Source: Paramoeba atlantica (lineage: Eukaryota > Protista > Discosea). From it: a stretch of DNA of 64,000 nt. The position numbers were made by a program, and so were the translations under genes. Below the pieces are notes generated by a model. That model worked only from the letters and a program-made list of their open reading frames with translations, was not told the origin of the DNA and did no database searches. This document shows, in pieces, positions 4,023 through 29,100 of the stretch. The stretch spans positions 186,001 to 250,000 of the forward strand of contig CDRNVI010000156.1 in NCBI GenBank assembly GCA_977017575.1, written 5' to 3'. The stretch's first letter is position 1. Every line of letters starts with the position of its first letter.

Positions 4023-5585
4023 ATGACTCTGGATTCTGATTCAAATGGCTGGCCTGATTGTTGTTATTGGAACAGATTCTGGGAAATCACTTGCTCAATC
4101 TTGTTGACAGTCTATCTTCTCTTTTTGGGATTTAATATGTATTGTTTGTGGCGGTTGAGAGGGACTGAAGGGAAGTTTCACTGTAAGAAGTTTTTTCATC
4201 AAGTTTGTTTTTTGTGTTTCACTTTGACCCAACTTTTGCTTTCTCAACTTTTCTGTTTGGCAGTCATCTGGTATATTGACAAGTGTTCGTGCCATTCAAC
4301 TTCTCTTTTTGATTTTGGGAAACGCTGTGTGGCCACACACACCCGGTTCTTTCTATTTGAAGAGAGAGATTTATCCTTCTCCTCACTTGTCTAACTTTCT
4401 TTTTTTTTTGTGAACAGGGGTGTATTACTTCTCTCAATTACTTACTTTTATCGGTGGAAATCTCTTTGCTTTAGTTTACAGTGCAGTGATCGCTTTTTGG
4501 GTGACATTTTATGTGTATCTTCTCCTCTCTTTCTTGCGTTTGAGAACGAAACAAATCTGAATTGATTTTTTTCAGGCAAACAAAATTTGGAGATTATTTT
4601 TCAACAACAAAGTACAACCATCGGCTTCAAACATACATTACTGCAACAGAGGTTCTTTGATCTTTATTTGTTTTGAAATGAATTTTTGAGGAATCTTATC
4701 GAAGACCACAACAGATTTTCTTTTTGGTGATTGTCATTTTAGAAAGTTTCTTCATGGTGTACACCAAAGCGATTGTCAAACATTCATTTATGTTTGTAGT
4801 GGTCACTTTCTTATTCTTCAATGCTCTCCTCTTGGTTTGTTTTATCCTAAAATCTAGCTGTTCTTGCTGCATTTTTACTCACCCATCCATTTTGATCATT
4901 TGAAGTTACTGGAAGGGATCGCTTTCTTTATTATTGGTTTTCTCCTCTATTATTCTCTAAGAGATCCCACCAATCCTCTGCATTTTCAAATGACACTTAG
5001 CAGCAGAGCCCTTCAAGTTCTCATCTCTTTTTTTTTTTGCTCACTGATCAAAAATCTCACTTTTCACACTCCCCCAAAAAGATTGTTGTTTTCGCTCTTT
5101 TCCTTTTTGTTGTGATGTTTACAAGAGCGATTCTCAATACCATTGAAGTCTTTAGTATCACCCAAGGATTTCAAGGAGGTTTTTATTATCCTTCAAAAAC
5201 CTCTTTCTAATTTTCAAAATCTGTTTTTACTCACCCAAAAACAATTAATTTTGTGCTAGATTTTCATCAACCATATGATAAAAGACCATCTTCTCCGGAA
5301 GACTCTGATCAGATGTTTATGGGAGAAGATTTTTCGTGGTGGTTTTACCTTCTTTATTATTTTTGGGGAGAATGTTTTCCATTGGGTCTGATGACCCTCT
5401 TTCAATCAAGGTTCGATCAATTTTTTTTCCCATCAGCTTCTGATGATTGATGATGGTTCTCCCAAACCAGACTCCCAAAATCCAAAAACTCGGTCATCCA
5501 TTGGAGTTCTCAAATTGAACCAACTGATGAAACAATCCAACTTCGCCCAACAGCAGACGGGAATGACTCTTATGACGAAGATTAA
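4023..5585 (+). CDS. 7TM membrane protein, TOM1/THH1/GPR137-like (paralogue 3)
   Basis: GWPDCCYW...CKKFFH, WWFYLLYYFWGECFPLGLMTLFQSR; last exon RLPKSKN...YDED*; similar exon layout to paralogue 2. Confidence 0.65.
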
Positions 5586-5713
5586 ATTTATTCGTTTTGA
5601 GAAGAACTTTTTTCAAACAGAATTTTGAACTCACGAAAGGTGAGGGGCAAAAGGATTCTGGTTTGTTTAAAAAATTAAATTGATTGAAATCGAATCTGCC
5701 TTCCAAAAAGTTT

Positions 5714-7908
5714 TCAGACTACTTGCCCAATTTCGTCTCCGTCAGGATCAAAAAGTCCTTTCAGTGTGGTCAGAGAGGAAAATGCAGAAGAAGGTCTTTT
5801 GGAGAAAGATGATGCAGTTTCTGGCTGGGATTGATGTTGCAAGAGAATTTGAACAGGAAATACAGATGAATATTCTCCACAATCAAAATTACATTCAAAT
5901 GAAAGAGAAAGATGCGAATGAGCTGACCAATCTGTTGCTGAAAAGTAAACGCGAATAAGAGCATTATCTGCATCAACTATTTGGGTTCGAGTTGATGGTG
6001 ATCCTTCTAAAGTTCCGTCATCTGATGATGCAGAACTTTTTATCGCCGAATTTCGTTGCAACTGATACTTGATCCAGGGTACTTTAAGAATCTGGAGAGA
6101 AATAAGAAGAAAGATTTTTAGTCAACTATTTTTTGAGAAAAAAATTAAGAAGAAAAAAGGGTGAAAAAAACCTGAGTTTTCACGAGGTCTGGAACTTGAA
6201 GATGTTGTTCAATTTGGAGGGATTTAAGAGAGACAGTGACTGATGCCTCTCTCAGATTTGTCACTCTCAATTGCAATTCCATTGCCTCATCTTGAAAAAC
6301 ATTTGAATAAAAATTGGAAAAAGATTGAAAAAGAAAGCAAACCCGTCCCAGCACTCGTTCTTTCCCATTTGGCAACAGAGAATACCGGAATAAAATAACA
6401 GGCCTTTCAACAAAAGAAATGAACAAAAAATAATGAAAACACTTTCTTCTTGAAAAATTTTGGCACTTACACAATGTTGCCTCTGAAATTCGAGGGAATT
6501 TAAAGTTGGTTTCACAATAACTTTGTCACATGTTCCACACCTTTTTGATCTTCTTGATCGCAGTGTCTGATAAAATGAACAAAAATGAGAAAAAAAAAAG
6601 GAAAAAAAGTCAAATTTCTCTCAAACAAAACCTTTCGGTGAAGTGGAATTTCGCTTAACTTCATAACCCCATTTTCAATGGCTATTTCTTCTCTACAAAG
6701 AGAAAGAATTTGTTGTCTATCATCGTGAACCCCAGGTGGAAGAGGATCCTCTAAAAAGAAATGAACTCAATTCTTTTCTGGGAAAAAAGACAACAAAAAA
6801 ATATTAAAAAAAAGGTTGATTCAAACCTTCAGAAGGGAAAGAGTTGATTCCCTCAAGATGCTTCCCTCTCGTCACAGATTTCGATTTGAAGAGACTCTCA
6901 TCTTGGAGTATTTTTTTCGAATTTTCGAGATGAGCAAGAGCTGGAGGTAATTCTTCTGGATCTAAAGATGTGTGTGGCCAAGAAAGTTCAATTTTTTTAA
7001 GAAATAAATAGAAATTCTTTGAAAAGTGAGAAGAACCTTCTTTTGCGATCAGGCGACTTGAAAAAGAAGATGACAAACTCGTTTGTAAAGTTGCCCCACT
7101 CCCAGAAGCAAGGGGATGAACAAATGATGGAACAAGAGGTTTAGAACTACTCTTTGAAGTACTAGAAAATGGAGGATCTAAGAGATCTGATTGTTCGTGC
7201 ATCTCTTCTATAATCCCAGAAATGACATTTTGTGCTTTATCCATTTCTTTCTCTCGAAGAACATTTCTCAAAGCAACATCCTCAGGACTCAATGCATATC
7301 CACAAGGTTCTTGCTTTGTTTCTTCTTCTTTTGGTTTTGTTGTTGTCTCTATTGAAAGAAGAGGCTGATCGTCTAAAAGAGAAACCCCCTCTTCAAGAGA
7401 ACTCTTTCCTTTCAGAAAAGGAGGAAGAGGGTCAACCATCACTTGAACATCTCTGAGAGCTGACAAAGAGTTCCATCGACAGAGAGGACATTTGAGATAG
7501 ACTCGGTCATCTCCAAGAGATTGAGAATAGGTCAGTTGGGATTGGCATCTGGGGCACTCAAAACATTTTGAACAACTTTTGTTTGTTTTGTTTGTTTTTA
7601 GAGGAGGAGGAGAGAAAGAAGAGAGAAAGCAAACCACAAACCGATTTTTTTGTTTCGTTGCTGTCGAACTTGTAATATTTTCAAGACAACCAGGACAAAA
7701 ATAAGAGTCAACTTCTTCTCGAATACAAAAGCTTTAAAAAAAAAAGCATCAACAAAGAAGAGAAAGAAAAGTTTGAGGGAGAAGAGAAAAGAAAAAACCG
7801 GCATTTCAGACTCGAACAAGAAACACAGAAATAAAGGTTCCATTGTGGTTGAAGATGCCCACACTCACACCCAACCAGAATCTCTGCTCTTCCCGTTCTC
7901 CTCCTCAT
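5714..7908 (-). CDS. DCTN4: Dynactin subunit 4 (p62)
   Basis: Spliced N-terminus LYFCVSCSSLKCRFCIREEVDSYFCPGCLENI...KNRCSKCFECPRC...YLKCPLCRW matches the p62 Cys-rich region; C-terminal beta-rich exons at 5714-6500. Confidence 0.85.
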
Positions 7909-7978: not shown

Positions 7979-8670
7979 TTTGGTTCGGAAAAAAAAAGAC
8001 TTTCTCTTTCTTTCTTTCTTCTTCTTTGCTTCTGGAAAATTGATAAAAGGGGGGAAGAGGACCCCAAACAACCTCCATCAAAGAGATGGAACATGAGAAG
8101 ATAATTGTAAGAGGAGGAGGAAAGTCACTATCAGCCAAATATACAGAGCCACACCTGAAAACAGTTGATGGTATTTATATCAAAGAAGATTCTCTTCAAG
8201 GGAACAGACATTGGTTTTCTCGTATTCACCCTGATGGGAGAAAATGGGAAGGGAGAATCTTCTTTGAAAGTGGTTCTTTTCTTTTATGTATTTCATTTTC
8301 TCTCTCGTGATTCCTGTTGGATTGATCGGAATCTAGGTTGGAAGATCAATTTCAAGGATCACTTTGGTGGCTGGACTTTCAGCCAAAAAGAAGATTCTCC
8401 ACAAAACAAATACCCTCCTCTTGGCAAATGGAAAGAATCTCGCTCAATAGGAGGTGATCACCCAGAGGATATTGATTACTCTGATATCTATCTTGACACA
8501 GAGGTTTGCATTTTGGTTTGTTTGCTTTGAGAGTGGTGTTTTTGGTTGTTTTGATGACTTCATTTGCAGGATTGTTTCGTGAAACCAGCAAAAAGAGAGA
8601 AATGAGGAAAAAGAATAAAAAGAAATTAAAATTTTGGTTCTGTGGATTGAATCTATTTGTCATCCTCAAC
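7979..8670 (+). repeat. Direct duplication, left copy (~690 bp)
   Basis: Aligns with 15659-16349 from TTTGGTTCGGAAAAAAAAAGAC to GTCATC(C/A)TCAAC; roughly 90-95% identical by eye. Confidence 0.95.
8086..8605 (+). CDS. Small hypothetical protein, 3 exons, copy A
   Basis: MEHEKIIVRGGG...VDGIY...WKINF...YPPLGKW...DTE|DCFVKPAKREK*; frame conserved with copy B, with many synonymous differences. Confidence 0.7.
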
Positions 8671-10094
8671 CACCCCTCTCAAAAGGAAACAATAGGAAAA
8701 GAAAACCGCAGAAGAATGTTGGTCGGAAGAGTGCCTGGACAAGACATGACATTCTCCATGGTGAAGTTGCTCTTGATATTGCATATGCCTTGGCCAATCG
8801 CCAGACTTTTGCCCCTTCTGGACTGCAGGAGCGAGTTGATCTCAGCAATGTTATTAAAAACCATGCATTTGATCTCTTTAAACGACATTCTCCTCTTTCA
8901 CCCCCTTCACTACTACCACCACCACTCTTATCATTTTCACATTCTTTCGAGAAAGTAAAAGATCTCTTTAAAAATTTGTTAGCTGCTATTCCAACAAATT
9001 GGGAGGTTTTTTTTTTTTTTTTAATTCTCTCAAAAAAAAAACTTAAAAAAAAAACTTTCAATAGAAACAGCTTCAAGAGAATTTTCATCACTTTTTATCA
9101 GTAAATCTCCGTGAACAAAAAAATGATTTGGAACAAAAAACCACCCTTTTTGATCGAGTTCCAGAGGGCGAAAGTATCAAACTTCCTTTGTACCCACGAA
9201 CACGAGCAATGCGCCTTTTCTATTCTGGGTTTATCTCAAAGGTCCAATTTTGGTCTTGCAAAACAGAAGTTGGTTACTTTCAGATTGTTTTTTCAGTTCA
9301 CCCAACTGTTCGCTCAACCCCCTGTCATTATGCAATGGTGATTCTCAGAAAAGATCAAATTGAACAAGGTGAATGTACGGTGTGAGATTTTTCATTTTTT
9401 TTTTTTTTAAAAAAAATATTGAATTAAATATTGATTCATTTTGATTTTTGTTTTTTAGTGCGAAATTGGACAAAGCAAAAATTGCTCTCATGGTGAAGCT
9501 GGGATTTTAGCTCTGCAAGCTGTTAAAGATGGTGTTTTGCCAATGGTGTGGGAGAAGAGTCAATCAGCGAGTGTTGTTGATAAGAGCACAGAAGTGATTC
9601 CATTTCTTATGTTGTTGCAGAAGAATCAAAAAATGGCACAAAAATTCTTTTGTCCTTTCTGCCCAAGAACATTTCAGGATCGTAAATCCGGTTTGTTGCC
9701 TCATCTCAAGGAGAATCATCATCAAAATGGAGAAGAAGACGAAGCTGAATTTTCGGAGTTGCGATTATCGAGCAGCAAACTTCTTGCATATGGGCTGGCA
9801 TTCCATCCTCTTCATGTTTCACCTGTTCTTTTCATCTCTGAAGATGCTGCTTTGAACAAAGTGGTTAAAAAAAAAAAAAAAGTGAACAAAAAAGAAAAAG
9901 AGAAGAGGAGAGGGGAGGAAAAAGAGGAAGAAGAAAAGGGAGGTAGTGAAGAAAATCTACCAGAAGAGACAAAGAAGAGAAAAAAGGGTCCACTGCAGTG
10001 TCCGCATTGTTCGGTTGGTTTTTCTTATCAGAAATGTTTTTTAAAGCATTGTGATAAATGTGGAAAACAATCAAGCAAAAAATTTGCAAAATAA
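8634..10094 (+). CDS. SWIM zinc finger + C2H2-type zinc finger protein (5' end uncertain)
   Basis: Exons joined in frame (donor 9006 WE|LQENF, donor ~9380 ECT|CEIG) give GECTCEIGQSKNCSH (CxC...CxH SWIM), then CPFCPRTF...LPHLKENH and CPHC...KHCDKC. Confidence 0.7.
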
Positions 10095-10163
10095 TAAAAA
10101 AAAATATTTATGAAAAAGGAGACAGAGTTAAGTTAGCCAAGACTTAAATAAGATCTGTTTTTA

Positions 10164-11276
10164 TTAATTTTCATTTTGAACAAAACACTTTCCCTCTTTT
10201 TCCTCCTCTTTTTCCTCCTCTTTTTCCTCCTCTTTTTCCTCTTTTTTTTTTTTTCCATTCTTCTTCTTCTTCCTCCTCCTTTTTTTTTTTGGTGGTTCAT
10301 TTGTTGTAGTTGTGGTTGGAGGTTTTGGGATGGTTCTTTCTTGGAAGAGCTCGCGTTCTAACTCAACTCGAGTAAAATAATGGAGGAGCAGAAAAGATCG
10401 GTGAATTAAAAAGATTCCAACCAAACGTTCACTCTTTGAATCGTTCCATACATCATAGGATCGAGTTCCATGCCATAGGACATCTGTATCCAAAAAGATT
10501 CCATCCCCAGGAAGCCACGGAACAGATTTGTCTGTATCTCCAATCTCCAAAGAACCCTCTCCGTACTTATCACTTTTAATTAAAAACAAGAAAGATATGT
10601 AATCATTCTCATCTTGATGGAGGATGGACGCCCCTTGAGGACACATAAAGAGGTGAAAAAGACCAAACTCTTGGGGATACGGTCGAATTTTCAAAACTTT
10701 CACAACGTCTGGCCGGTATCGAGTCAACTTGGCAGAAGCAGTCTCCCCAAGTTCTACTAGCAGTTCACGAAGTTCTGAGCTCATTCCATTCCTGCCTCCT
10801 TCACCAGCTTTAAAGACTTGATCAATTCCAGCACGATAGTGGGCTTGTTGGTTCCAAAGACCACACCGATAATAGGTTTTTTCTCTGTCTTCTGCCCTTC
10901 TGTCATTCGTCAGCTTTTCCCATCGTTTCTCTGCCATCAACACAGAGGCCAATCTTTCCATTTTTTCCTCTGTAAATATTCCCTTCAGTTTGTGGGCTCG
11001 GTAACAATACTTCCCCTGGGGAGTTTCCACTGGAAACTCCAAATAAGCGTTCGCATTCAAGACTGGATAGCATGACGTTGCTGGCACAGGGGGCACTCGG
11101 TGTCTCGTTCTTTTTGTCGGATTCTCGATACTAAAGGAGATCTTCCTCATTTTTTTTGAGTTTTTTCTCTTTCTCTTTTTTTTTTCGTTTGGAACAGAAA
11201 CTTTCTCCTCTTCTTCCTCTTTCCCTCCCCTCTCCCGAAAACTTTCCTTTCCCTCTTCTTTCGCTCCTTCCAACAT
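10164..11276 (-). CDS. TET/JBP-like 2OG-Fe(II) dioxygenase (cassette 1), intronless
   Basis: HQD (10611-10619)...GEGSLEI...PWLPGDGIFLDTDVLWHG (His ~10470)...ERLVGIFLIH matches the HxD...PGD..F...L.H...R...F.H pattern of fungal/algal TET/JBP proteins. Confidence 0.75.
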   Translation of the reverse strand: MLEGAKEEGKESFRERGGKEEEEEKVSVPNEKKKRKRKNSKKMRKISFSIENPTKRTRHRVPPVPATSCYPVLNANAYLEFPVETPQGKYCYRAHKLKGIFTEEKMERLASVLMAEKRWEKLTNDRRAEDREKTYYRCGLWNQQAHYRAGIDQVFKAGEGGRNGMSSELRELLVELGETASAKLTRYRPDVVKVLKIRPYPQEFGLFHLFMCPQGASILHQDENDYISFLFLIKSDKYGEGSLEIGDTDKSVPWLPGDGIFLDTDVLWHGTRSYDVWNDSKSERLVGIFLIHRSFLLLHYFTRVELERELFQERTIPKPPTTTTTNEPPKKKRRRKKKKNGKKKKEEKEEEKEEEKEEEKEGKCFVQNEN

Positions 11277-11465
11277 TTTTCTTTTCTTTTTCTTTTTTCT
11301 CCTTCTTTCTCTCAAAGGCGACCTGCAACTGCAAATATCAAGCCCAAGAAAATGAATTTGAAAAAAGAAAAGAAAAAGAAAAGGTGGCAGAAACAAAAAG
11401 AAAAGAAGAAAGAAAAAAAAAAGTTGCAAAAAAAAAAACTTTCTTTTTTGTGACTCAAAAATTAG

Positions 11466-12147
11466 CCAAATCAGGTTGTTTCCCTATCGCATGAGGAAAA
11501 AAAAATGCCAAATCAAGTTATTTCCCTATCGCATGAAAAAAAAAAAAGGAAGTTTCTTTTTTGACTTTGAAAGCTCCACAAAAGATCAAAGAAAGTTTTC
11601 AAGTTTTGGGCATTCATGTTGCTTCCAAACCTATCACAAAATGAAACAAATTCACTGTTGTTGAAAGATTGAAATTGAGAGACTTTCTTTTTTACCCAAC
11701 CAAATCAGGTTATTTCCCTATCGCATGAAAAAAAAAAAGGAAATGTCCTTTTTTGACTTTGAAAGCTCCACAAAAGATCAAAGAAAGTTTTCAAGTTTTG
11801 GGCATTCATGTTGCTTCCAAACCTATTACAAAATGAAACAAATTCGCTGTTGTTGAAAGATGGAAATTGAGAGACTTTCTTTTTTACCCAACAAAAACCC
11901 ACCAAATCAGGTTATTTCCCTATCGCATGAAAAAAAAAAAAGGAAGTTTCTTTTTTGACTTTGAAAGCTCCACAAAAGATCAAAGAAAGTTTTCAAGTTT
12001 TGGGCATTCATGTTGCTTCCAAACCTATTACAAAATGAAACAAATTCGCTGTTGTTGAAAGATTGAAATTGAGAGACTTTCTTTTTCACCCAACAAAAAC
12101 CCACCAAATCAGGTTATTTCCCTATCGCATGAAAAAAAAAAGGAAAT
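11466..12147. repeat. Tandem array of ~200-bp units (3 full + 2 partial)
   Basis: Units start with CCAAATCA(G/A)GTT(A/G)TTTCCCTATCGCATGA at 11466, 11508, 11700, 11902 and 12104; the full units are near-identical. Confidence 0.95.
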
Positions 12148-12205
12148 TTTTGTTCTCTTTTGCACTAAAAACTTTTTATTGCTTCAGAAAAAGTTTGACT
12201 CAAAC

Positions 12206-15200
12206 TTATTTAAGAATGAAAGTCACAGTTCCCCCTTTTTTTTTGATTCCCCCACTGGTAAAGGTCACTTCTGTTGTATCCTCACTCCTCGATTCCATTT
12301 CTTGATCGTCGTCTGGAGTGTTATCATTCGAACTTTTTGGCTTTCTTCTGCTTGAAAAACCTCAAAAAAAAAAGGTTTTGAAAAAAAAAAAAGTGAGAAA
12401 AAAATTAACTCATTTTTTGCTTTCTTCAAATTTGCTTGCAAGTTTCTTATTTTCTGACTTTGTTTGTCCGAAAAATTCTTCCTGTTTTCATGCATGAATT
12501 AAAAATAAAAAATGTTCAAAAAAAACAAATAAAACCAGTCCTCAGTTTGATCACCTTCCTTCTCCACCCTTTCTTGGAGTTTGTCTATTCGTTTCAGAAG
12601 AACCTCATTAATCTTTTTCTCCTCCTTTTTCTCCTCCTTTTTCTCCTCCTTTTTCTCTTCCTTCTTCACCCTTTTCACCCTTTTCACGCGACATTCTGTT
12701 GGCTGTTTTCTTTTCCGCTGGAGAGACTTAACAAGCTCGAAATAACGGTCATGATAAAGAGGAGAAAAGGATATCCGATTCCCGATCTCAGATAACTGAA
12801 ACACCAAAAAGTTTGCCTCGCACCCTGAAAAGAAAGAAAATAAATAATTAAAATCAAAAATTTTATCAACATTAAAAAGATGTTACGTTTGGATGTGAGT
12901 TTTTTTTGCACATAAATCCGCACATGAAGATCTGCAGATGAAATGATACCAGCACAAAAAAAGATATCTGGTTTCTCAGTTTTTTGACAGGTTTTTTTTT
13001 TAAATTCACAACCAGATGCTATTAAAACCTATTGGGATTTTATGGTAGTTTAATTTTAATTCAGGTGCCAAAAAAAAAAAGAAAACCTGCTGAGAAGAAT
13101 TTTCAACAAGAATATGGGATGGTTTGTGCTCAGCATTTCCATAACCATGGGCTTCAAGGTTAGCCTCTTCATCAAGATGGAAAAAGAGAGAATACAATCT
13201 TCCATGGTAAGTCTGTTTCAATTTTAACTGGTTTGTTTCATAATACAATGTCATTTGTTCCAATGTTTCATAATCTTGATCTTCCACCAACCTTCTTTTC
13301 TTTCTTTCATTTTCTTCCTTCAGTTCTCTCTGCCTCAATTTTCTTTTTTTTCTTTTCTCTTTTTCTTCTTTTTCTTCTTTTTTCCCCTTTTTTTCTTTTT
13401 CTTCCTCTTTTTCTTCTTTTTCTTCTTTTTCTTTGTTTTCTGGTTCTTTTTCTTTTTCTTCTTTTTCTTTTTCTTCCTCTTTTTCTTCCTCTTTTTCTTC
13501 TTTCCTCCCCTCTTTTTCTTTTTCCTCTTTTTCTTCTTCTTTTTTCTCTTTTTCTCTTGCCTCATTTTCTTTCTCCTCTTTTTTTTCTTCTTCTTTTTCT
13601 TCTTTTTCTTCGTTTTCTGGTTCTTTTTCTTTTTCTTCTTTTTCTTTTTCTTCCTCTTTTTCTTCTTTCCCCCCCTCTTTTTCTTTTTCCTCTTTTTCTT
13701 CTTCTTTTTTCTCTTTTTCTCTTGCCTCATTTTCTTTCTCCTCTTTTTTTCTTTCTTCTTGCTCTTCTCCTTCTCTTTGTCCTTTCTCCCCCCCTTTTTC
13801 TTCCTCTTTTTCTTCTTTTTCTTCGTTTTCTGGTTTTTTTTCTTTTTCTTGCTCTTTTTCTTGCTCTTTTTCTTCTTTCCCCCCCTCTTTTTCTTTTTCT
13901 TTTTCCTCTTTTTCTTCTTCTCTTTCTCCTTCTTCCCCCCCCCATTTTTCTTCCTTTTCCTCTTTTCCTTCTTTTCCTTCCTCTTCTTCCTCTTCTTTTT
14001 TCCCTTCTTCTCTTTCTTCTTCTTCTTCTTCTTCTTCTTGCTCTTTTTTTTCCTTTCTCTCTTCTTCCTTTTCCTCTTTTCCTTCTTTTCCTTTCTCTTC
14101 ATTCTTCTCTTTTTTTCCTTCTCTTTCTTCCTCAGATGACAATACAACACTTGGAGAAAAAGATTTATCAGAGCCTGATTGAAAAAAGTTTAAAAAGGTG
14201 TTTCCTTGCTGAAAAAAAAAACAAAACCTTGTTGTTGCTTGCTTCTTTCTTCAGAAAGGATGCGCCATATTTCTTGACGCCCAGAGGCCACATCTCTAAG
14301 CAGAAGAAAAAACTGAAAAGACAGAAAATTTAAAATCACCACAAAAAAAAGGAAAATGAAACTGTTTAGTGAATAAAATGTTTGAATCCTGTTCTTCAAC
14401 AAAAAACTTCTTTTTACAAAAACTTTCTGCTGATTTGAGCATGTAAATCCCACAATCAAACAAATTTGGCTGTTTTTTCTTTTAGAAAAAATCCATCCAC
14501 CCTCTCAAAAACACTTCTTTACCTGCTGTGGGGTATCCTTCTCTAAAACAGAACATATGATTGGCCCTTTTCGTTTTTCCTCTTGATAAGAGGCAAGATA
14601 ATCCAAAAACTTAATCCATTCCACAAGATTTGTTACCCAAGATGAATTGGACGACAGCATCATCCCAGCAATAGAATCATAGACCTGGATTGAAAAAGTC
14701 CTGCTTGGTGGTTTTGGAACCTCCACAATCACCAAGGCCCAGTGCTGCTTAAAATGAAGTGGAACAATTATGTAATTGGATTCCAAAGCTGCTTTGGCAA
14801 AACTTTTTCCAATTTTAGCTGTCTTGGGATCGAATTTGTGGGGGTTTGTGTGGGTTTTTAAGAAAAAAAAGGAAGGAGGAGTTTCAATTGAACTTTCACG
14901 GCTCCATTTTGGAATCTAATGGTCTTTCATTTAAGAAAAAATCCTTCATTCAACAAGATTCAAATGAAAAGAATAGACCAGAATATACTTCAAGTAGTCG
15001 AGCATGTAATTAATCATTGATCCGAATAAAGGAGCTTCAGGAAGCAAGCATTTGATATCAGAGACACTGAGATCAGTTGATTTCTCTGCAAGTGGTCGAA
15101 GAAAAACTGCAAGATCTAAAACAAAAAACAAAATAAAAAAATCATCTTTTACAAAAGAACAAAAATAATAACCATTGTTGGATTGGCAGATAGCGCGTAT

Positions 15201-15499
15201 TTGTGTTGAATATGCTGTATCTTCCTTCAAGAGAAAGTTAGTCCAAGACAAACAAAAAAAACAGAGTTTAACTTACATTTGGGGGTTGTAATTTTTCCTG
15301 AGGAGAATCGGGTGATGGTGGAGAGTCATCACTGCTCCTCCATGGGGGCACTATTTTGATAATTTCCAATTCACCCTCACCCTCTTCTGAACTGGAAAAA
15401 AAATTGAGAAAAAGGTAAAAATCAAACAAAAAAAGAAGATTGGAAGAACCTAATTTCTGAGTCAAACTCAGAGGTACTCTCTTCCATCTCGAGATCCAT
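12206..15499 (-). CDS. Ulp1/SENP-type (C48) cysteine peptidase with long Glu/Lys-rich tract, multi-exon
   Basis: YIIVPLHFKQHWALVIV (His), QVYDSI (Asp), spliced PQQ|PNLFDCGIYML (Gln/Cys); then E/K low-complexity region 13340-14130 and a C-terminal region ending TFILK*. Start MDLEMEE at 15499. Confidence 0.75.
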
Positions 15500-15658
15500 G
15501 AGAAAAAGGAAAAAAGAAAGGCAAAAGATAATACAAAAATAAAACCAAAAGGTGAACAAAAAAAAAATGACCCGCCCCTGCGATGCGGTTATATCCAATC
15601 GGATTCTTATAATAAATCTTATAGGATTTATTTAAGATTTTTCTTGCTAAAAATCTTC

Positions 15659-16914: not shown

Positions 16915-19900
16915 ATGTCAACGGAAGCTGCTGTTTGGGAAGACGTTCTGTCTTGGCTTCTCAGGTTTTTTTTCTTTTTTCATTTTTATCTTCAAAAGTT
17001 TGAAAGAAAGGATTCTCATTCTCTTTCTTTTTCAAAAAAAAAAAAGGGAGAAAGATGGAGGGGGAGAAAAAGTTCCAGAAATTTGTGTGGGGTATCGGCC
17101 ATACCAGACAAGGATCAGAAAAATGGCCTTAGCTGCCAAACAAACTGTTTCTGAAAGAGAAGAAGAAAGAGGAGGAGCTCTTCTCCTTCCTGTCTCTTTA
17201 ATGGGGGTTTGTGTCTGTTTTTTGACCGACACCCCGGAAGGACAATCTCCTCAAGATTTTTTGGCTGCTGTTCAGATCCTCTCTCTTTCTCTTCCTTTTG
17301 TTTCTGAGAGGGTTTTGGATGTGAAAATGGAAGATCTTTGTTCTCTTTTGGAAAAGATTTTGTCTGATAATGTCGCTTCCCAACCAATGTGTTTTGCTCT
17401 TTTGAGGTCATTTCGTCCTCTTTTGTCAAAGCAAGTTTGAGTTCTTTTTCCCCCTCTTTCTTTTTTCTTTTTCCCCCTCTTTCTTTTTCTTTTCATTTTT
17501 AGAACCTCTTTTTTTTTTCAAAAATCATTTTTCAAAAACTCACATATCAAATTTTCATAGCCTCTTGTGAAATGGCAAACTTCATCCTCTCTCTTAAGCT
17601 CTCTGAAACTTCTTCTTGCTCTCACAAATACACTCCCCAAGTCAGCAAACCAAAAAGAGACATGTGAAACAATTGGAGCAATCCTCAGAGAAATTCGCCT
17701 CTCAATTGACCGAAGACAAAAAGAGAGAGAGAAAGTTGTCTCTCTTCCAAAGAGCGTCTGTGTTTGTTTAAAGAATTATTTGCAATTGGCTTTGGAGAAG
17801 TGTTTGAGTTCTCCGGAAGTTGATGAGGTTGAGAAAGTCTTAAACTTGATTCATGAGGTTTTTCTTTTCTCTCTTGACTCTCTCTCAATTCCCCTCTTTC
17901 TCTCTTTTCTTTGTTCTAAAATGATTTGAAAAAGGTTTTGGGATACCTTCCAGCGTCAACAATTTCGTCAATCTCGGAGCAATTGTTAAACATTCTCCTC
18001 AATACTGAGCATAAGTCTCCTTATTCTCGAAACCAGTCTGTTTTGTTGTCTGTTATTTCAATATTTCGAAAGATATTTCAAATGCACCAAGCTTTTGTAT
18101 TCTCTTTCAGAGGTATCTCTTTCTCCTTTTCGTCTTCTCTCACCTCTCTCTGATAATGATAACCCCAAATAGACGAAGAAAAAGAAGAGATTCCAGTTGC
18201 AATTGATCTCCCTTTGGGATTTCTCACTAAATTCGAAGAGGCTTTTCTCAGATTTCCTTTTCAATCCTCTCCTCCTCCTGTTGTCTCTCCTGCAGCCCTT
18301 CTCCTCTCCTCTGCTCATCACTCTCTATTTCTTCTCTCTCCTGAAGCTGCACACTCCACTCTCTCGAAAGTGTTCTCTTCACTCTTTCAACTTTTTGGTT
18401 TGGACCAATTTCGATATTCATGTGATGGTGTTGGAGAAGCATTGATTGAAATTGTTCTTAATACCATTGATGATCGGACTGTTTTTGAGTGTGCAAGTTC
18501 AATTGGCCCTGTCCCTCTTCGCTCTGTTCTTGAAGTATTGATCTTTCTTTATTTTCATTTTATTTTAATTTTGATTTCGTATTTATTTTTCTTCAATTAG
18601 ACAATGGAAATGGGATTCTCTTTTCCTTACAGACCCTCTTTCCCAACAATCTTAAACTTGTACTCCCACCTTTTCTTGGTTTGTGGCAAAGAGTCCAAGT
18701 CTCTTCTTTCTGGAGTTCTCAATCGGCTCTGCGAACAACAAGAATCTCAATTCAAAGAAGAAAAAGGGAATTTTCTCGCTTCTTCTGTAGCTTCAACGCT
18801 CTTATCAACTCCTTATGCAAAGAACTTACACTCTGTCATTGGTGCTGCTGTTCGTGGAATGGGCTTGTCTCTCTTTTTAGAGGTAATTTTGTCTTCTTTT
18901 GGTTGAAAAAGAATTTGTTTTATCTTTGGCAAAGATTTTTTCTGATTTTAAGCAAAAATGTTTAGGTACTTCCTTTGGATCTTCCTTCAACAAATGACCC
19001 AAGACCCTTTGAGCAGTTTCTTGGAAAAAGGACATGGCTTCTCCCAATCATCAAAGAAAATATTATGCCGGGAAGTGGGCTTTCAGTTTTTGTTCAGAAA
19101 ATCCTTCCAATGATTGATGCATTGAAGAAAAAAGAAAAAGATTTGTCTCTTCTGGTGGAAGGAGGGTTGATTGAAATGGCTGAAGAAGATGAAGTTGTGT
19201 TGACTTGGAAGAGGTGTAAGAATGTCGGTGAGAAGTTATGGGGACTTTTTCCTTGTTTTTGTATTTGTCCTATTGATGTTGACGAACAATTTAAAAAGCT
19301 TGCGAAGAGATTGGGAATGGGTTTGAAAGAGGTTTATTCATTTTTTAAAATTTCTGAGAAAGAAGATAAATTATTGATTTCTATTATCTCCTTTTAGGAA
19401 AATGAGATTCGACCCACCATTTGCTTGGGCCTCTCTTCTCTCATTGATCATTTCCATTACGTCACATCTTCACAAGAACCTCGCGAATTCCCTGACCCTT
19501 GGTTCTACGTACCAAACAAACATCACCAACGACAGACCTTCACAAAATTGAGAAGCGGAGGATCGTTAGAGGAGTGGGCTTCTCATTCGAGATATCGGTG
19601 TCTTGTTGTATCAATAGAAGATGCAGAGAAAGGAGAGAAAAGTGTTAAAAGATTCCAACAGAATTTTTTGCCTGTTATCTTTAATGCTATTACTTCTGCT
19701 TCTCCTGAACAGGCAGCTCACCTCCATTCTGTTCTCTCTTCTTTTCTCTCCATTGTCACCAGAAAGGAGGCAGTTCAGTATTATGGAAGTGTGATTGCAA
19801 AGATCAAAGCCTCAGAGAAAGAGAAAGAGGAAGAGATGGAAGAAGGAGAGAAAGGAAAGGAGAAAGGAAGTCACAACAAAGTTCAAGTGGTATTACTCAA

Positions 19901-22100: not shown

Positions 22101-23838
22101 TTAGAGTTTTTGGTTGATTGAAAAGTCCCACTCAAAAAGTTTTTCTTCTTCAATGTGTTCGTCAATGATTATATCTTTCCTTCTCTTCATATATTCTTGA
22201 ATCCCTGCTCGGTTAATCGGTCCCCATCTCATAAAAACAAAATGTGGATCCTCCTGATGAATATTAACGACTCCAAAAAGCTTCTTTGGAAAGAATTTTC
22301 AATTTGAAAGAAATGAAAGAAAAGGAATAAAAAAATCTTTAGTACCAGCCCACTATTGCTATTGATTGAGGCATGATTGTCGGGTGCAACTAACCCTTCA
22401 TGATAAAAAATATCTTTTTGACTCAAAATGGAATCGAACAACAAAGCACTCACAAATTTTGTCCCTTTGCCTGAACCAAAATGATCACTCCTTTCATTTT
22501 CCCAAAAGCTCCTCTGATATGAAACAAACAACTTTAAAAAAAAACCTTGAATTTTGGGAAGAAGACACCCCTGTAATCCAAATTGTGTATTCTCCCTAGT
22601 CGAGCTTCTGCAACTGAAATACCACCCAACAATTTCTCCTATTTCCGTTTTTAAAAGAAATACACTCAAATCTAAAAAAATTGAATAAGACCTGTTTGAA
22701 TATCCTCAAGAATTCTACTCGATCTTTTCATTGAAGCGCCCAAAATTCCTAAGACAGGAGCTGGATAAGGGGAAATAAAACCTGCTTTCATTGCGCCTTG
22801 CAATTCATTATACAACTGAGGGATTTTGTGGGTATCACTACATCTGAGAGCTCTCAGACGATATTGGGGTTCTTCTGCTTTGAGAGAAGGAAGATGAGAG
22901 AGAACTGATTCTCCTTTCGACGAACTTGAACCCCAATCTTTCGCTTCTTTGAGTTCAATTTCTTCAATTTCTTCAGTTTCAAAAAGCATGTCTTTTCTTC
23001 CATTCAGATATTGTTGAAGTTTGACACGGTCAATTGGACCCCAACGAAAAAAAATGCGGTTTGGAGTCTCTCGGTGATATTTCATTTCTCCAAACTCCGT
23101 AATCTGGATTGAATTGATTCAATTGAGATATAATCAAGAAAAAGAAAGAATAAGGGTCTAATACTTTTTTGAGACCCCGAATTGCGATGTGATTGTTTGG
23201 AGCAACAAGACCCTCATAGAAAATAACATCTTTTTGTCGAAGGATGCCCTCATAAATCAGAGGACCAATTAATCCCTTTCCTTTTGAAGCACATTTCAAA
23301 ATTATTAAATTGAGAGAAATATTCAATAATATTCATTGAAACAATAATCAAAAATACTTCTTAGAGGACAAGCTCAAAATTAACAAATCATAAAAACACA
23401 TAATCCCATCTCACGGAACAAAATAACAAAAAAAACCTCTTGCTCTGGGAAGAGCACAAGATTGGATTCCACAAAGAGTCTTTTCTTGAGTCGAACTTCG
23501 AAAAGAGAAAAACCACCCATAAAACTCTCCTATTCACGAGTTCACTCTTCACTCTTCTTTTCCTTCCCTTTCTTCTCCATAATAATTTCCTTTCCTTTCT
23601 TCAAGAAAAAAGACCCCATCACCAATTATTCTTCTCTTCAAAAACAAAAACCTGTTTTAATATCTTCAACAACAAAACTAGAACGATTCATTGAAGTGGC
23701 CAAAGCACCCACAATACCACGAGGATACGCAGAAATATACCCAGCTTCAATGGTTTCCTTCAACTCATCATCATACAAAGAAAGGATTCTTTTCGTGTCG
23801 CTACAACGGAGACCTCTCACTCGAAATTGAGCTTCCAT
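22101..23838 (-). CDS. Tandem double-GNAT acetyltransferase, EctA-like (gene Y)
   Basis: Two repeats of FRxRxLRCSD...IVGWxFSxRSST.ENT..G.Q...LP..RGKG...YEGLVAP.NH..I...RWGPI; acetyl-CoA motif A RARGKGL. Confidence 0.7.
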
Positions 23839-24143
23839 ATTTTGGAAAAAAAGAGAGAGATTGAAAGAGAAAAAGAAAGGGGGAGAAAAGAAAGAAAAAA
23901 AGAAAGGAAGAGCGAAACCGAAAAAAAGTGAAACAACAAAACAGAAAAATTCCACGTCAGCAGAAAAAGAACGCAACAATTCCTTTGTCGCTTTGTGACG
24001 CATCTGCTGATTGTTCACTCCTTTTGGATCACTTTTCTCTTTTCATTTTCCAAATTTCTCATTTCTTCTTGAAAAGAAGTGTGTTTCACAATTCAAAAGA
24101 TGAATGGGGAGTTTCCATTTTAACCCCTTAATTTTTTTTATGC

Positions 24144-25935
24144 TTAAAGTTTTGAATTGGTTGCAAAGTCCCATTCAAAAAGTTCTTCTTCCTCAACATG
24201 TTCAGTGTCAATAATTAAATCTTTCCTTTTGTTCAAATACTCTTGCAATTTGCCTCGGTTGATTGGTCCCCATCGATAAAAAATGAAATGCGGTTCCTCA
24301 TGATGCATTTTTAGGTCTCCTCCGAATTGCCTAACTACCTGTATGTAAATTGGAAGAATTAAAATTGAAATATTTAAAATTGAAATTGAAAAGAGAGAAA
24401 GAAGTCAGAATCATAAAAAACCCCGCGAATGCCTCTGATTGAAGGAGAATTATCAGGGGCAACTAACCCTTCATGATAAAGAACATCTTTTTGGCTCAAA
24501 ATGGAATCACTCATCCAAACAGGAAGTATTCTTTTCCCTTCAAACAAATCAGAAATGTCACTCAAAAAAGAATGAAGAAATCAAAAACCTCGCAATTTAG
24601 GAAGAAGACATCCCTGTAATCCAAAAAGTGTATTTTCTCTAGTGGAACTCCTACAACTGAAATACCACCCAACAATTTCTCCTATTTCCGTTTTAAAAAA
24701 AAAATACATCCAAATCTTAAAAAAAATTGAAAAAAGACCTGTTTGAATATCCTCAACAATTCTACTCGATCTTTTCATTGAAGTACTCAAAATCCCTAAT
24801 ATTGGAGTTGGATAAGGAGCCACAAACCCTGCTTCAATTTCACCTTTCAATTCATTGTACAATTGAGGGATTTTGTTGGTATCACTACATCTGAGAGCTC
24901 TCAGACGATATTGAGGCTCTTCTGCCTTGAGAGAAGGACGATGAGAGAGAACTGGTCTTGTTGCCATTGTGGGAAGGTCTTTCAAGTTCCAATCTTTGAG
25001 TTCAATTTCTTCAATTTCTTCAGTTTCAAAAAGCAAGTCTTTTCTTCCATTCAAATATTGTTGAAGTTTGACACGGTCAATTGGACCCCACCGATGAAAA
25101 ATGCGGTTTGGAGTCTCCCTATGATATTTTAATTCCCCTCCTAGGTGTTTGAATGTCTGTATTAAGAGAAAAAATGAAAAAAACTTGTTTTGAAGATTCG
25201 AAAAGAAGAGAGTGAAAACTGATTCAAAGATGCTTCGGATTGCTAGGTGATTTTTTGGATTAATATGACCTTCATAGTAAATCACATCCTTTTGTCGGAG
25301 AAGAACATCACATAACACAGGACGAAAGATTTTTTTTCCTTTTCAGATTAACAATTTAGAAGAAAATCGTGTGAACAGAAAAAATCAAATATTTCGCAAA
25401 AGAAACTCACATCTTTTCCAACCCAAAAAAACAACACAAAGAAAACAAAAGCAAAAACAAAAATCCAAAAACATAAAAAGAAAAACCTTGAGCTTTGGGG
25501 AGAACACAAATTTGAATCCCACAAAGAGTGTTTTCTTTTGTCGAACTTCGAAAAGAAAAATACCACCCAACAATTTCCCCTATTCTCACAAACTTCAAAA
25601 ATTCATCCACCCTCTCACTCTCTCCTGTTCTATTCTTTCGTTTTTTCCTTCTTTCGATCAATGATTCTCGAAGTTCCTTTCTTTCACTTCTTTCTCTCTT
25701 CTTTCTCTCTTCTTTCTTTCTTCTTCAATTTCTTTTTTTCTTCGGATAAACCTGTTTTAATCTCTTCAATAACTGTACTTGATCGGTTCATTGAATTGGC
25801 CAAAGCACCCAAAATTCCGAAAGGGTAGGCAGATATTAATCCAGCTTGAATTGAATCTTTGAAAACATTGTACAAAGATGAGATTCTTTCGATATCACTA
25901 CAACGAAGACTTCTCAGACGAAATTCTGGTTCCAT
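24144..25935 (-). CDS. Tandem double-GNAT acetyltransferase, EctA-like (gene X)
   Basis: Paralogue of gene Y with the same two-domain layout, linker WGPIDRVKLQQYLNGRKD and C-terminal LFEWDF motif. Confidence 0.7.
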
Positions 25936-26144: not shown

Positions 26145-29100
26145 TTATTTGCACAGGATCTGGCAATTTTCTCGATTGTTTGTTGTGAAATCAGAGAGTA
26201 ACTTAAAACCTCTCACATTTGGACACTGTGCAATTGTCACATCCAAACATTTTTTCTCGTCACCACTGAGAAGCTGATACCAGCAACACAAATACACTGG
26301 AACTGGTGTTGGTGTTGGTGTTGGCACTGGTGTTGGGGTAGGAGATGGGGTAGGAGTTGGTGATGGTGTTGGAGGAGGGTAACAAACATCAAGACACTGG
26401 TACTCCCCAAGTTCAAACACCTCTCGAAGGTCCCATCCTTTAAGTGGAGGACAATCGAAAGGTAAACTCAAACATTGTTGGTTATTGCTGACTGTCTGTG
26501 AATCATATACACAACAATTTTTCAGTTCGACTGGTGTTGGTGTTGGGGTTGGGGTTGGTGTTGGAGTTGGAGTTGGAATTGGGGTTGGAATTGGGGTTGG
26601 GGTTGGGGTTGGTGTTGGGGTTGGTGTTGGACTTGGAGATGGGGTTGGGGTTGGGGTTGGAGTTGGGGTTGGGATAGGAGGGTAGCACTGCGCGAGACAA
26701 TCCAGATCTGTCAATAGTAATTCATTCAGGAGATCCATATTAGGGATGGCTGGACAGTCATATCCAAAACTCAAGCATTGGTCAATCATTGTAGAAGAGG
26801 AAGAATAATGGCAACAATTACGAAGTGGAGGGATTGTGGGGGTTGGGATTGGGGCGATTGTTGGGGTTGGAACTGGATTTGGAGTTGGAATTGGAGTTGG
26901 TTCTAGATGAACAGTGGGAGATGGAGTTGGAGTGGGTGTTGGTGTTGGGACAAGATGAAAAAGGTGTACTGTAATTTTAAAGTTTTGAACTCTTCCATTG
27001 TCATTTTTTACTTGATCATCAACAATAAACTTCCAAGTTCCTGAAATAGAAGATTTATAAATATATCAATTAGATATTCACTCAAAAAGTTCATCAGAAA
27101 AAAAAACCTGTTGGATTTTCATTCCAAAATTTTGTGGTCGAAAATTTCCAGTTTCGGAATGAGAGGTTTGGAACCTTTTCAATACGATAGGAGATCTCCA
27201 TTCCAGCATTTCTCACCAGTGGGTCAATGCCCCTGTGGATAAAATTGGTCATTTACGAAAAAAAAAACTTTTCAATATTTTTCTTTCGAGAAAAAAAAAC
27301 CTAAAGTCACTTGAAGGGACACTAAATAAGACAACACCACCCCTTCTTGACAACTCAGTCGACGATGTATAATTTCCCTCTAAAAGTAGATGAATTAAAA
27401 AAAAGGTGAAGTGGAGGTTTAAAAAAAGAAAAGAAAACCAATTAAAACAATATCTGGGACAAATTTCCGAGCATGATCAAAGATAATGGTAAGTTCTACT
27501 TCTGGTGTACATATCCCATGATCATTGAGAAGAAGAATATAAGTTGTTCCAGGAACTTTTTCTCTGTTGTGGGGAAGGAAAAAATTAACAAAAGAACTTT
27601 TTTCTCGAAAGTTTAAAAAAAAAACTTTGAATATGTGAAATCGCATCTTTGAAGTTGACAACAATAACCTTCAGAAATGGGAGTCACAAACTTTATCGAT
27701 TTACTTCGCTTCCAAAAACGAGCCTCTTTTTTGGGGGGAAAGAGATTGAGTTGGAAAATTGAAAAAAAATATTTAAAAATGAATTTTAAAACCTGAATTA
27801 ATTGGATCAACTGGGAATGAAAATAATCTCCGTTCTCCAACAAGAACATTCGCTTCAAGCTGCCGAAAAGTTGAGGAAAGTCAGAATTCAAAGTGGGAAG
27901 TCAAAAAGCAAAAAAAAAAAAGACCATATCTGAAATTGACTGCCTCATTCTTGTAAAAACACTTCTCATTCCGGAAGGAGAAAGCAAAGAGATTTCTAAA
28001 TCACCTGGAGAAGAGTGTGCAATATCTGCTTCCACAAGTACCTTTAAATTGAAAAAAAAAAAGCTTTAGTTGATTTTTTTCTTTTGAACAATATCTGGAA
28101 AAGTTTTAAACCCAATCAATGAGAAAATTTGACGAAAAAGAAGCGATAAAACTCAATGTCCCCTGTTCCGGAATTTCACGGCCCGCTGACATATGATAAA
28201 AGAGTGGCTTGAAAAAAAAAATGTTAAACCATGATAAAAATAAAAATTATGTTCAAGATCTTAAGATCGAGGAATAAAAATTATTTAAAAAGAAAAACAA
28301 ACCTCTTGATAATAGATTCCAGGGTAATTTGCTGCTTTATTGACAGCCTGAGTAGCGTCAATATTTCCAAAGCCAATTTGGTCATTATATACCTTTCCAG
28401 CCCCATTTGTTTCGCTGGAGATTCCAGAAGGAAAAATAGAAGTTTCCACAAGGATATGGGCGATATCACGAGGAGAAAGACGATGGCTGCTTGCTTCTAA
28501 CATGAGAGCAACAACTCCAGCTGAAAAAGAAAGAGGGAAAATTGAATGAGAATTTAATTTGAAGATACAAAAGAAGTCACAAATATTAACCAGCATTAGC
28601 TGAAGCATACTGGCCACCAAATTGTTTCATACAAACTGAATTTTGATCATAAGCAACTGGGATATCGTAAAAATCATCTCCTCCTGGGGCAGAAACAATC
28701 TGAGAAGGAGAGAAAAAAATGAAAACAAAAATATAAGAACATGAAAAGATAGAGAGATTGCAAGGAAAGATCGTACAAGGTTTGAGCATGGTTCAGAATA
28801 GGTTGCTGGAAGACCACCAACAGTGTGCGACCCAACATTGATCACAAAGGGGGGATTGCTGTACATATCATAATTACAATTGTCTTTTTCACCACCATCA
28901 CCTATTTATTAAAAAAAAGAAGAAGAGTGAGTGACCCAGAAATATAAAATCAAAAGGAAAAAAGGTACCAGAATATCCAATGATAATTTTATTGTGTGAA
29001 ACAGCTTCCATAACACTCTCCCAACATTCTGTACCTATTCTGCAAGTGAGACCAAAATTAAAAAGAAAACAGAGAGGGAGAAAACTTACACAGGAGATTC

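Follow-up and report, generated by a model that had tools for sequence, protein, structure and literature searches.

A probable dead, 5'-truncated copy of a TET/JBP-carrying DNA transposon between two copies of a small gene in Paramoeba atlantica

Plant Mutator-like elements of the KAONASHI/KI-MULE type carry a C48 (Ulp1) peptidase gene as a passenger and encode a transposase with a SWIM finger; the Zisupton transposons are said to have been named for a zinc finger and a SUMO protease. Genes for TET/JBP-type dioxygenases have been described from eleven lineages of fungal DNA transposons, including Harbinger elements with three open reading frames (ORFs) as well as Zisupton and Kyakuja elements (PMC12730594); the same paper makes no mention of piggyBac, SWIM, Ulp1 or non-fungal hosts. 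In the TET-carrying Harbinger elements of rust fungi (PHISTA; Kojima 2025, PMC12730594), a DDE transposase of the PIF/Harbinger-ISL2EU-Spy (PHIS) group is accompanied by a captured TET/JBP dioxygenase and a third protein without Myb/SANT domain, and escape from methylation-based silencing was proposed as the role of the captured enzyme. In Basidiomycota, TET/JBP genes adjoin the transposase genes of KDZ (Kyakuja, Dileera, Zisupton) and Plavaka elements and have expanded together with them. Among mobile elements, TET/JBP-carrying DNA transposons, so far documented in three fungal lineages only, stand out as the best candidates for an active removal of the silencing marks of the host. Here, a ~7-kb block of Paramoeba atlantica DNA is described that comprises a SWIM/C2H2 zinc-finger gene, a dioxygenase gene and a Ulp1 peptidase gene (positions 8671-15658 of the window, i.e. 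of the whole analyzed stretch of 64,000 nucleotides from contig CDRNVI010000156.1). The block is probably a dead, 5'-truncated copy of a TET-carrying cut-and-paste DNA transposon family, and together with its relatives it suggests that the same strategy is present in other microbial eukaryotes.

The locus shares with the PHISTA elements the captured TET/JBP dioxygenase together with its proposed role, and a third protein that lacks a Myb/SANT domain; its transposase would likewise be of the PHIS group, a placement that is tentative here. In contrast to PHISTA, SWIM and C2H2 fingers are part of the transposase, the block includes a gene for a Ulp1 peptidase, the dioxygenase is from another, Pfam-undetected family, the nearest sequences stem from an MMETSP marine-protist transcriptome and from environmental assemblies and not from fungi, and the window copy is truncated and without definable ends. 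The adjacency of TET/JBP and transposase genes is shared with the KDZ and Plavaka elements of Basidiomycota, whereas no full-length relative matched the KDZ transposase model and the cysteine clusters typical of KDZ were not seen; compared with the KAONASHI/KI-MULE type, there is no MULE domain signal, a dioxygenase is present and the host is not a plant. The features of the block are as follows (strand in brackets; L002 and L010 are the two relatives introduced below):

8671-8708: left junction; similarity to the flanking copy A' stops at 8670, similarity to the relatives of the transposase starts at 8694 (protein) or 8709 (DNA)
8682-10094 (+): 5'-truncated transposase-like gene with exons A (8682/8709-9002), B (9064-9379) and C (9459-10094)
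9374-9491 (+): SWIM signature by direct reading, C-x-C / intron 9380-9458 / C-x7-C-x-H
9651-9722 (+): C2H2-type finger 1, C-x2-C-x13-H-x4-H, conserved in L002
9999-10061 (+): C2H2-type finger 2, C-x2-C-x12-H-x3-C, conserved in L010 only
10167-11276 (-): TET/JBP-like 2-oxoglutarate/Fe(II) dioxygenase, intact, 370 codons, both tails rich in Lys and Glu (K/E-rich)
11508-12141 (no strand): 3.2-copy tandem repeat of a 202-bp unit (94% matches), upstream of the start codon of the dioxygenase
13006-14142 (-): K/E-rich acidic ORF, 378 codons, without an ATG of its own, with a short non-repetitive C-terminal end
~14299-15499 (-): Ulp1/SENP (C48) peptidase gene, several exons, candidate ATG at 15499

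The zinc-finger gene, beside which the earlier note on this DNA had seen no transposase, is itself, according to the alignments, the 3' two-thirds of a transposase-like gene. Two relatives were found in a single assembly. The first, L002 (ENA ERZ24900291, contig ctg3480l), encodes an MMETSP-like dioxygenase that is the closest homologue of the window enzyme (45% identity) and contains, directly upstream of it, a homologue of the zinc-finger gene with 43-51% identity over all three exons (tblastn); this homologue extends upstream into ORF 6788-7438, which has no counterpart in the window. Searching with this ORF yielded a single further relative, L010 (contig ctg2551l). The exons of L010 and the window share 75-82% amino-acid identity (tblastn); on the DNA level, window positions 8709-10108 align with 86.4% identity (1422 columns, blastn) and positions 10225-10420, which represent the 3' end of the dioxygenase gene, with 91.5% identity and in the same convergent orientation. 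In ORF 9527-11029 of L010, the equivalent of exon A is continued by ~330 further N-terminal residues in one frame. The N-terminal part conserves in L010 and L002, in this order, a helix-turn-helix-like segment and the motifs 'SDP', 'GG.S(D/E)E', 'FDRGG' and 'R..VE', which is the motif order of Harbinger-type (DDE_Tnp_4) transposases. The homology of the window to these full-length relatives starts ~25-40 bp inside the block (8694-8709), right after 'R..VE' with the third catalytic residue; in consequence, the window copy has none of the three presumed catalytic residues. Since the catalytic part of the transposase is missing, the window copy cannot move itself.

Exon A contains no in-frame ATG; all three exons are still open and the splice sites are kept. 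The residues of the SWIM motif (Cys 9374-9376, Cys 9459-9461, Cys 9483-9485 and His 9489-9491) are split by intron 9380-9458, and both the motif and the position of its intron are identical in the window, L010 and L002. A K/E-rich linker separates the two C2H2-type fingers, whose Pfam matches were below threshold (zf-C2H2_4, E=0.0036 for the window and E=1.2e-4 for the L010 copy; the Pfam searches were made exon by exon on unjoined exons). Exon B of L010 (11120-11408) is spread over two overlapping frames, which reflects a frameshift or an assembly error.

The similarity between L010 and the window stops abruptly on both sides (39% identity left of 8709, 53% beyond 10420), and the flanks differ: the conserved stretch is bordered in L010 by a LINE-like (long interspersed element-like) reverse-transcriptase fragment and a G-alpha gene, in the window by a small gene (copy A, see below) and the rest of the dioxygenase gene. 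Truncation has affected opposite ends of the two copies: the window lacks the 5' half of the transposase gene and L010 retains only ~200 bp of the dioxygenase gene. Exons are 89-92% and introns 86% identical between them, with a ratio of non-synonymous to synonymous divergence (dN/dS) of 0.4-0.9. Linkage of transposase and TET genes was thus observed in three copies, i.e. the window, L010 and L002. The presence of the paired genes at unrelated loci with different flanks and with signs of decay indicates decaying transposon copies and not an orthologous host locus; the mobile-element origin proposed in the earlier note is therefore supported by the recurrence of the gene pair at the non-homologous locus L010 and in the diverged copy L002, whereas the block is a truncated fragment and no intact element of a non-autonomous or as yet unrecognized kind. 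The outcome that the earlier note had named as a refutation, i.e. single-copy genes that keep their place in relatives and are never associated at another site, does not apply to the pair of zinc-finger and TET genes. In L010, the LINE-like fragment (9004-9726, minus strand) lies immediately next to the 5' end of the transposase gene.

L002 may be a complete member of the family. Its gene block (transposase, dioxygenase and acidic gene) is enclosed on each side by five copies of a ~300-bp unit in inverted orientation, with the innermost arms at 5461-5799 and 14602-14940. The repeat arrays of this contig span 2168-5800 and 14556-16565, with more copies at 18300-19880; they are maybe clustered miniature elements or long composite terminal repeats.

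The dioxygenase ORF alone had no Pfam match at E<=1 and no match in a PDB sequence search, and a word-based protein search with the whole ORF returned nothing, as the K/E-rich tails swamped the words. When the word search was restricted to the core, two relatives with 42-47% identity were obtained (from an MMETSP marine-protist transcriptome and a JGI metagenome), and an exhaustive HMMER search with the resulting three-sequence profile recovered 120 representative proteins at E<=1e-3, 85 of them at E<=1e-10. Among 51 family members, 12 matched Tet_JBP (PF12851) at E<=0.1, the best one with 5.2e-12; the near relatives of the window enzyme scored 13-19 bits against this model, below its cut-off of 34.9, and a few family members matched TauD or WelO5 over the C-terminal strand. 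The three-sequence profile was uninformative against the PDB, as was an AlphaFold model based on three sequences (predicted local distance difference test, pLDDT, 50); 51 sequences sufficed in both cases. With the 51-sequence profile, the best PDB matches were NgTet1 entries 5cg8 (E=1.4e-5) and 4lt5 (E=8.7e-5), aligned across HxD...H...R, and the corresponding AlphaFold model revealed a beta-rich core (pLDDT 88, predicted template-modeling score, pTM, 0.86). Nine of the top ten Foldseek matches were NgTet1, TET2 or CcTet (E ~1e-6, template-modeling (TM) score ~0.5); rank 7 was occupied by the non-TET oxygenase PolD (9blq), CMD1 ranked 20-27 and AlkB-family matches were lower.

The HxD motif is located at 10619-10611, the distal His at 10472-10470 and the Arg at 10427-10425; H176 and D178 show no variation among the 51 aligned sequences, and H225 is conserved in at least 90% of them. 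In the profile comparison these residues align with HKD...H of NgTet1, and all residues that are invariant in the closest relatives are kept. NgTet1 (4lt5/5cg8), TET2, CcTet and CMD1 are thus the best profile or structure matches, with HxD...H...R aligned, although identity to them is only 10-17% and the TM score ~0.5. On the basis of family profile and predicted structure, the enzyme is accepted as a member of a divergent TET/JBP-like family that is missed by domain searches, with putative base-oxidizing activity and substrate, and the TET/JBP-like assignment of the earlier note is supported. As to its designation of the block as a second TET/JBP cassette, an hmmsearch with the family profile over 1352 six-frame ORFs detected no other member in the window, and 100 other ORFs (1-40.7 kb) gave no Tet_JBP match.

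The peptidase gene was correctly recognized in the earlier note, as were the positions of all three genes. Its exon 14508-14915 matched Peptidase_C48 with 32.5-32.9 bits (cut-off 20.7; E=1e-7 and 7.7e-8), and exon 14299-14481, which carries the Q..DCG motif, with E=0.003. The catalytic residues are readable throughout (His 14744-14742, Asp 14678-14676, Gln 14472-14470, Cys 14454-14452; motifs HW, YDS and Q..DCG), and the His motif aligns with that of SENP2. Because the acidic ORF is adjacent to the peptidase gene on the same strand and has no ATG, both may form one gene with the acidic ORF as its 3' part. In L002, an acidic gene comes after the dioxygenase gene, and with its end the C-terminal 41 residues of the acidic ORF share 32% identity (pairwise E=7e-4); a Myb/SANT match was found in no ORF of the block or of L002. 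The three-gene arrangement including Ulp1 was found nowhere besides the window; the peptidase gene may have travelled with the element. The acidic ORF was not mentioned in the earlier note, nor was the 202-bp repeat, of which no copy was detected elsewhere in the window, in L002 or in L010; it may act as a promoter array or represent a subterminal repeat.

The block lies between two direct copies of a 0.69-kb sequence, which were detected by blastn of the region against the window (93.0% identity, 698 columns) and bracket exactly 8671-15658, in agreement with the earlier note; that each copy represents a complete small gene had not been reported there.

7979-8670 (+): flanking copy A, complete small three-exon gene with ATG and stop, plus ~100 bp of upstream DNA
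8086-8269, 8337-8503, 8570-8605 (+): exons 1, 2 and 3 of copy A, the last one with the stop codon
15659-16349 (+): flanking copy A' of the small gene, directly upstream of the multi-exon RRP12 gene (~16.8-21.7 kb)

The small gene matched no Pfam family. The two copies are several indels apart, and each possesses a distinct unique outer flank. They diverge by 7.6% in exons and by 1.3% in introns and upstream DNA (Fisher p=6e-4); synonymous divergence (dS) is 0.16 and dN/dS 0.39 for the exons. A higher similarity of non-coding positions than of synonymous sites is unusual and may be due to gene conversion or to constraint on the introns. No inverted repeats were found at the ends of the block, which on its left side sets in with the broken transposase gene.

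In the proposed family, complete members would encode a transposase in which SWIM and C2H2 fingers come after a Harbinger/PHIS-like DDE core, a divergent TET/JBP-type dioxygenase and, as third product, an acidic protein, to which in the window a Ulp1 SUMO-type peptidase would be joined or which it would precede in the coding order. Mobilization of the DNA would be the task of the transposase in an active element. Modified bases on the element DNA (most likely 5-methylcytosine) would be oxidized by the dioxygenase, and the peptidase would remove SUMO from silencing factors or chromatin; together, oxidation and deSUMOylation would protect the element from silencing that depends on methylation and SUMO. 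The anti-silencing role and the enzyme substrates are proposed by analogy to the described systems. The reading frames of dioxygenase and peptidase are intact in the window despite the loss of the transposase. If the pairing with a SUMO peptidase is real, it would constitute a testable second arm of anti-silencing.

Several observations weigh against this interpretation. The peptidase gene was not found in L002 or L010, and its link to the element is its position between the duplicates only. The transposase family comprises only three copies in the searchable data, and scans of metagenome and viral contigs with the dioxygenase or the SWIM-exon alignment yielded no relatives. The match to DDE_Tnp_4 was restricted to the D1-D2 segment of L002 and remained sub-threshold (E=0.049, 13.7 bits, cut-off 24.8); the L010 transposase gave no DDE_Tnp_4 match in Pfam, and neither relative matched another transposase model. 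Terminal inverted repeats or a target-site duplication could not be defined for the window copy, the difference between a dS of 0.16 and the 1.3% intron divergence of A and A' leaves the age of the event uncertain, and a flanking duplication of 0.69 kb is not the product of a DDE transposase. As this duplication is no transposase footprint and the left edge of the block breaks a gene, the block did not transpose to this site in its present form. Probably, a single repair-type event would fit the duplication, e.g. the capture of an element fragment at a staggered break; an abortive excision that was mended with nearby sequence would fit as an alternative repair route.

Among the other explanations, a composite locus is possible but rather doubtful: only 8671-~12150 (transposase remnant, dioxygenase gene and 202-bp repeats) would be transposon debris, the Ulp1/acidic region a resident host gene, and A and A' old tandem paralogues. 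The absence of Ulp1 from both relatives fits such an arrangement, and so do the two apparently functional copies of the small gene, whose dN/dS and dS are as expected from an old duplication; moreover, a repeat array edges the gene block of L002, so that the 202-bp array could likewise mark an element end. However, this array has no counterpart in L002 or L010, the C-terminus of the acidic ORF is weakly similar to the third gene of L002, and the unique DNA begins and ends exactly at the edges of the duplicates, which is explained most simply if all of it arrived at once. Domestication, by which the dioxygenase, the peptidase and perhaps the zinc-finger remnant (driven by the promoter of copy A) would now be selected as host chromatin genes, is unlikely. 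It would account for the intact 370-codon dioxygenase ORF with all invariant residues, for the complete set of catalytic H, D, Q and C in the peptidase and for the three open remnant exons with their splice sites; on the other hand, the remnant has no in-frame ATG, no in-frame acceptor was recognized by inspection after exon 2 of copy A, dN/dS against L010 amounts to 0.4-0.9, and at a divergence of a few per cent an intact ORF of 1.1 kb is a weak sign of selection. An assembly mis-join as the origin of the 0.69-kb copies and the block is very improbable: no supporting evidence was found, the copies differ at 7% of positions and by indels and have distinct unique flanks, and the genes of the block are coherent, with homologues elsewhere in the same relative order.

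The dead transposon copy could also be assigned to another superfamily than PHIS. The earlier note had pointed to Zisupton/KDZ and Mutator-like elements, superfamilies that combine SWIM fingers and Ulp1; in favor of them, the SWIM motif is placed behind the nuclease core, an arrangement also seen in MULE transposases, fungi harbor TET-carrying Zisupton and Kyakuja elements (PMC12730594), and L002 possesses long inverted repeat arrays. These readings were rejected for lack of any profile signal, as KDZ, MULE and Transposase_mut gave no Pfam match at E<=1 (L010 9746-11029, P0132 and the L002 ORFs), and the motif order and the short distance from the second acidic residue to 'R..VE' fit DDE_Tnp_4, the sole profile with a signal, if a weak one; a Zisupton/KDZ or Mutator-like origin is accordingly quite improbable. 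The element is probably PHIS-like, an assignment that is put forward tentatively on the basis of these motifs.

Members of the dioxygenase family adjoin transposase genes of other types as well. The gene for P0002, which is 42% identical to the window enzyme, immediately follows a gene for a piggyBac transposase (DDE_Tnp_1_7, E=4.7e-32); across L001 (1144-3897), L005 (142-4341) and L003 (234-6302), the neighbors of family members are the piggyBac transposase gene or large ORFs. By eye, these large ORFs contain acidic and Cys/His motifs similar to those of transposases: the ORF of L005 (1037 aa) appeared pogo-like and those of L003 and L008 (~800 aa) displayed CxxC...H; they obtained no Pfam support and were not counted as evidence. 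The data suggest that a dioxygenase family missed by standard domain searches was picked up by at least two transposase superfamilies. A far-reaching view, which at present must be called speculative and in its entirety improbable, would be that, in microbial eukaryotes other than fungi, several unrelated superfamilies of DNA transposons (piggyBac, PHIS-like elements with SWIM/C2H2 fingers and possibly others) recurrently carry this Pfam-undetected TET/JBP family (~120 clusters at 50% identity) as a passenger, that it is teamed here with Ulp1 as a module erasing DNA methylation and SUMO-dependent heterochromatin marks, and that the window copy is nearing domestication and maybe arrived by a repair-type insertion that duplicated the 0.69-kb target. 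For P0129, a sequence of 53 residues in the cluster of P0014 of the same family, 243 contigs are listed, of which one measures 168 Mb.

For annotation, the 'zinc-finger protein' should be treated as a transposase stump and the block be masked as transposon-derived. The window itself is eukaryotic and gives no indication of a human contig, with a guanine-plus-cytosine content of 33-44%, short, interrupted and densely spaced ORFs and, in the few cases read by hand, introns of ~60-80 bp; the neighbors of the block are ordinary genes (cyclic-nucleotide phosphodiesterase, SDE2, WD40 and Kelch proteins, Hsp70, RRP12 and a 5S rRNA gene). The 5S rRNA gene is a single dispersed copy at 55110-55228 on the plus strand (Rfam RF00001, 102.8 bits). 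Repeat families ~2 kb apart at 22229-25868 indicate tandemly duplicated genes on the minus strand (ORFs 22232-23118 and 24584-25342), for which no Pfam family was matched. At 26292-26957, a coding repeat of the (TGGGGT)n type with periods of 6, 12 and 18 nucleotides is located inside ORF 26148-27065 (minus strand) and would give rise to a Pro/Thr-rich low-complexity protein.

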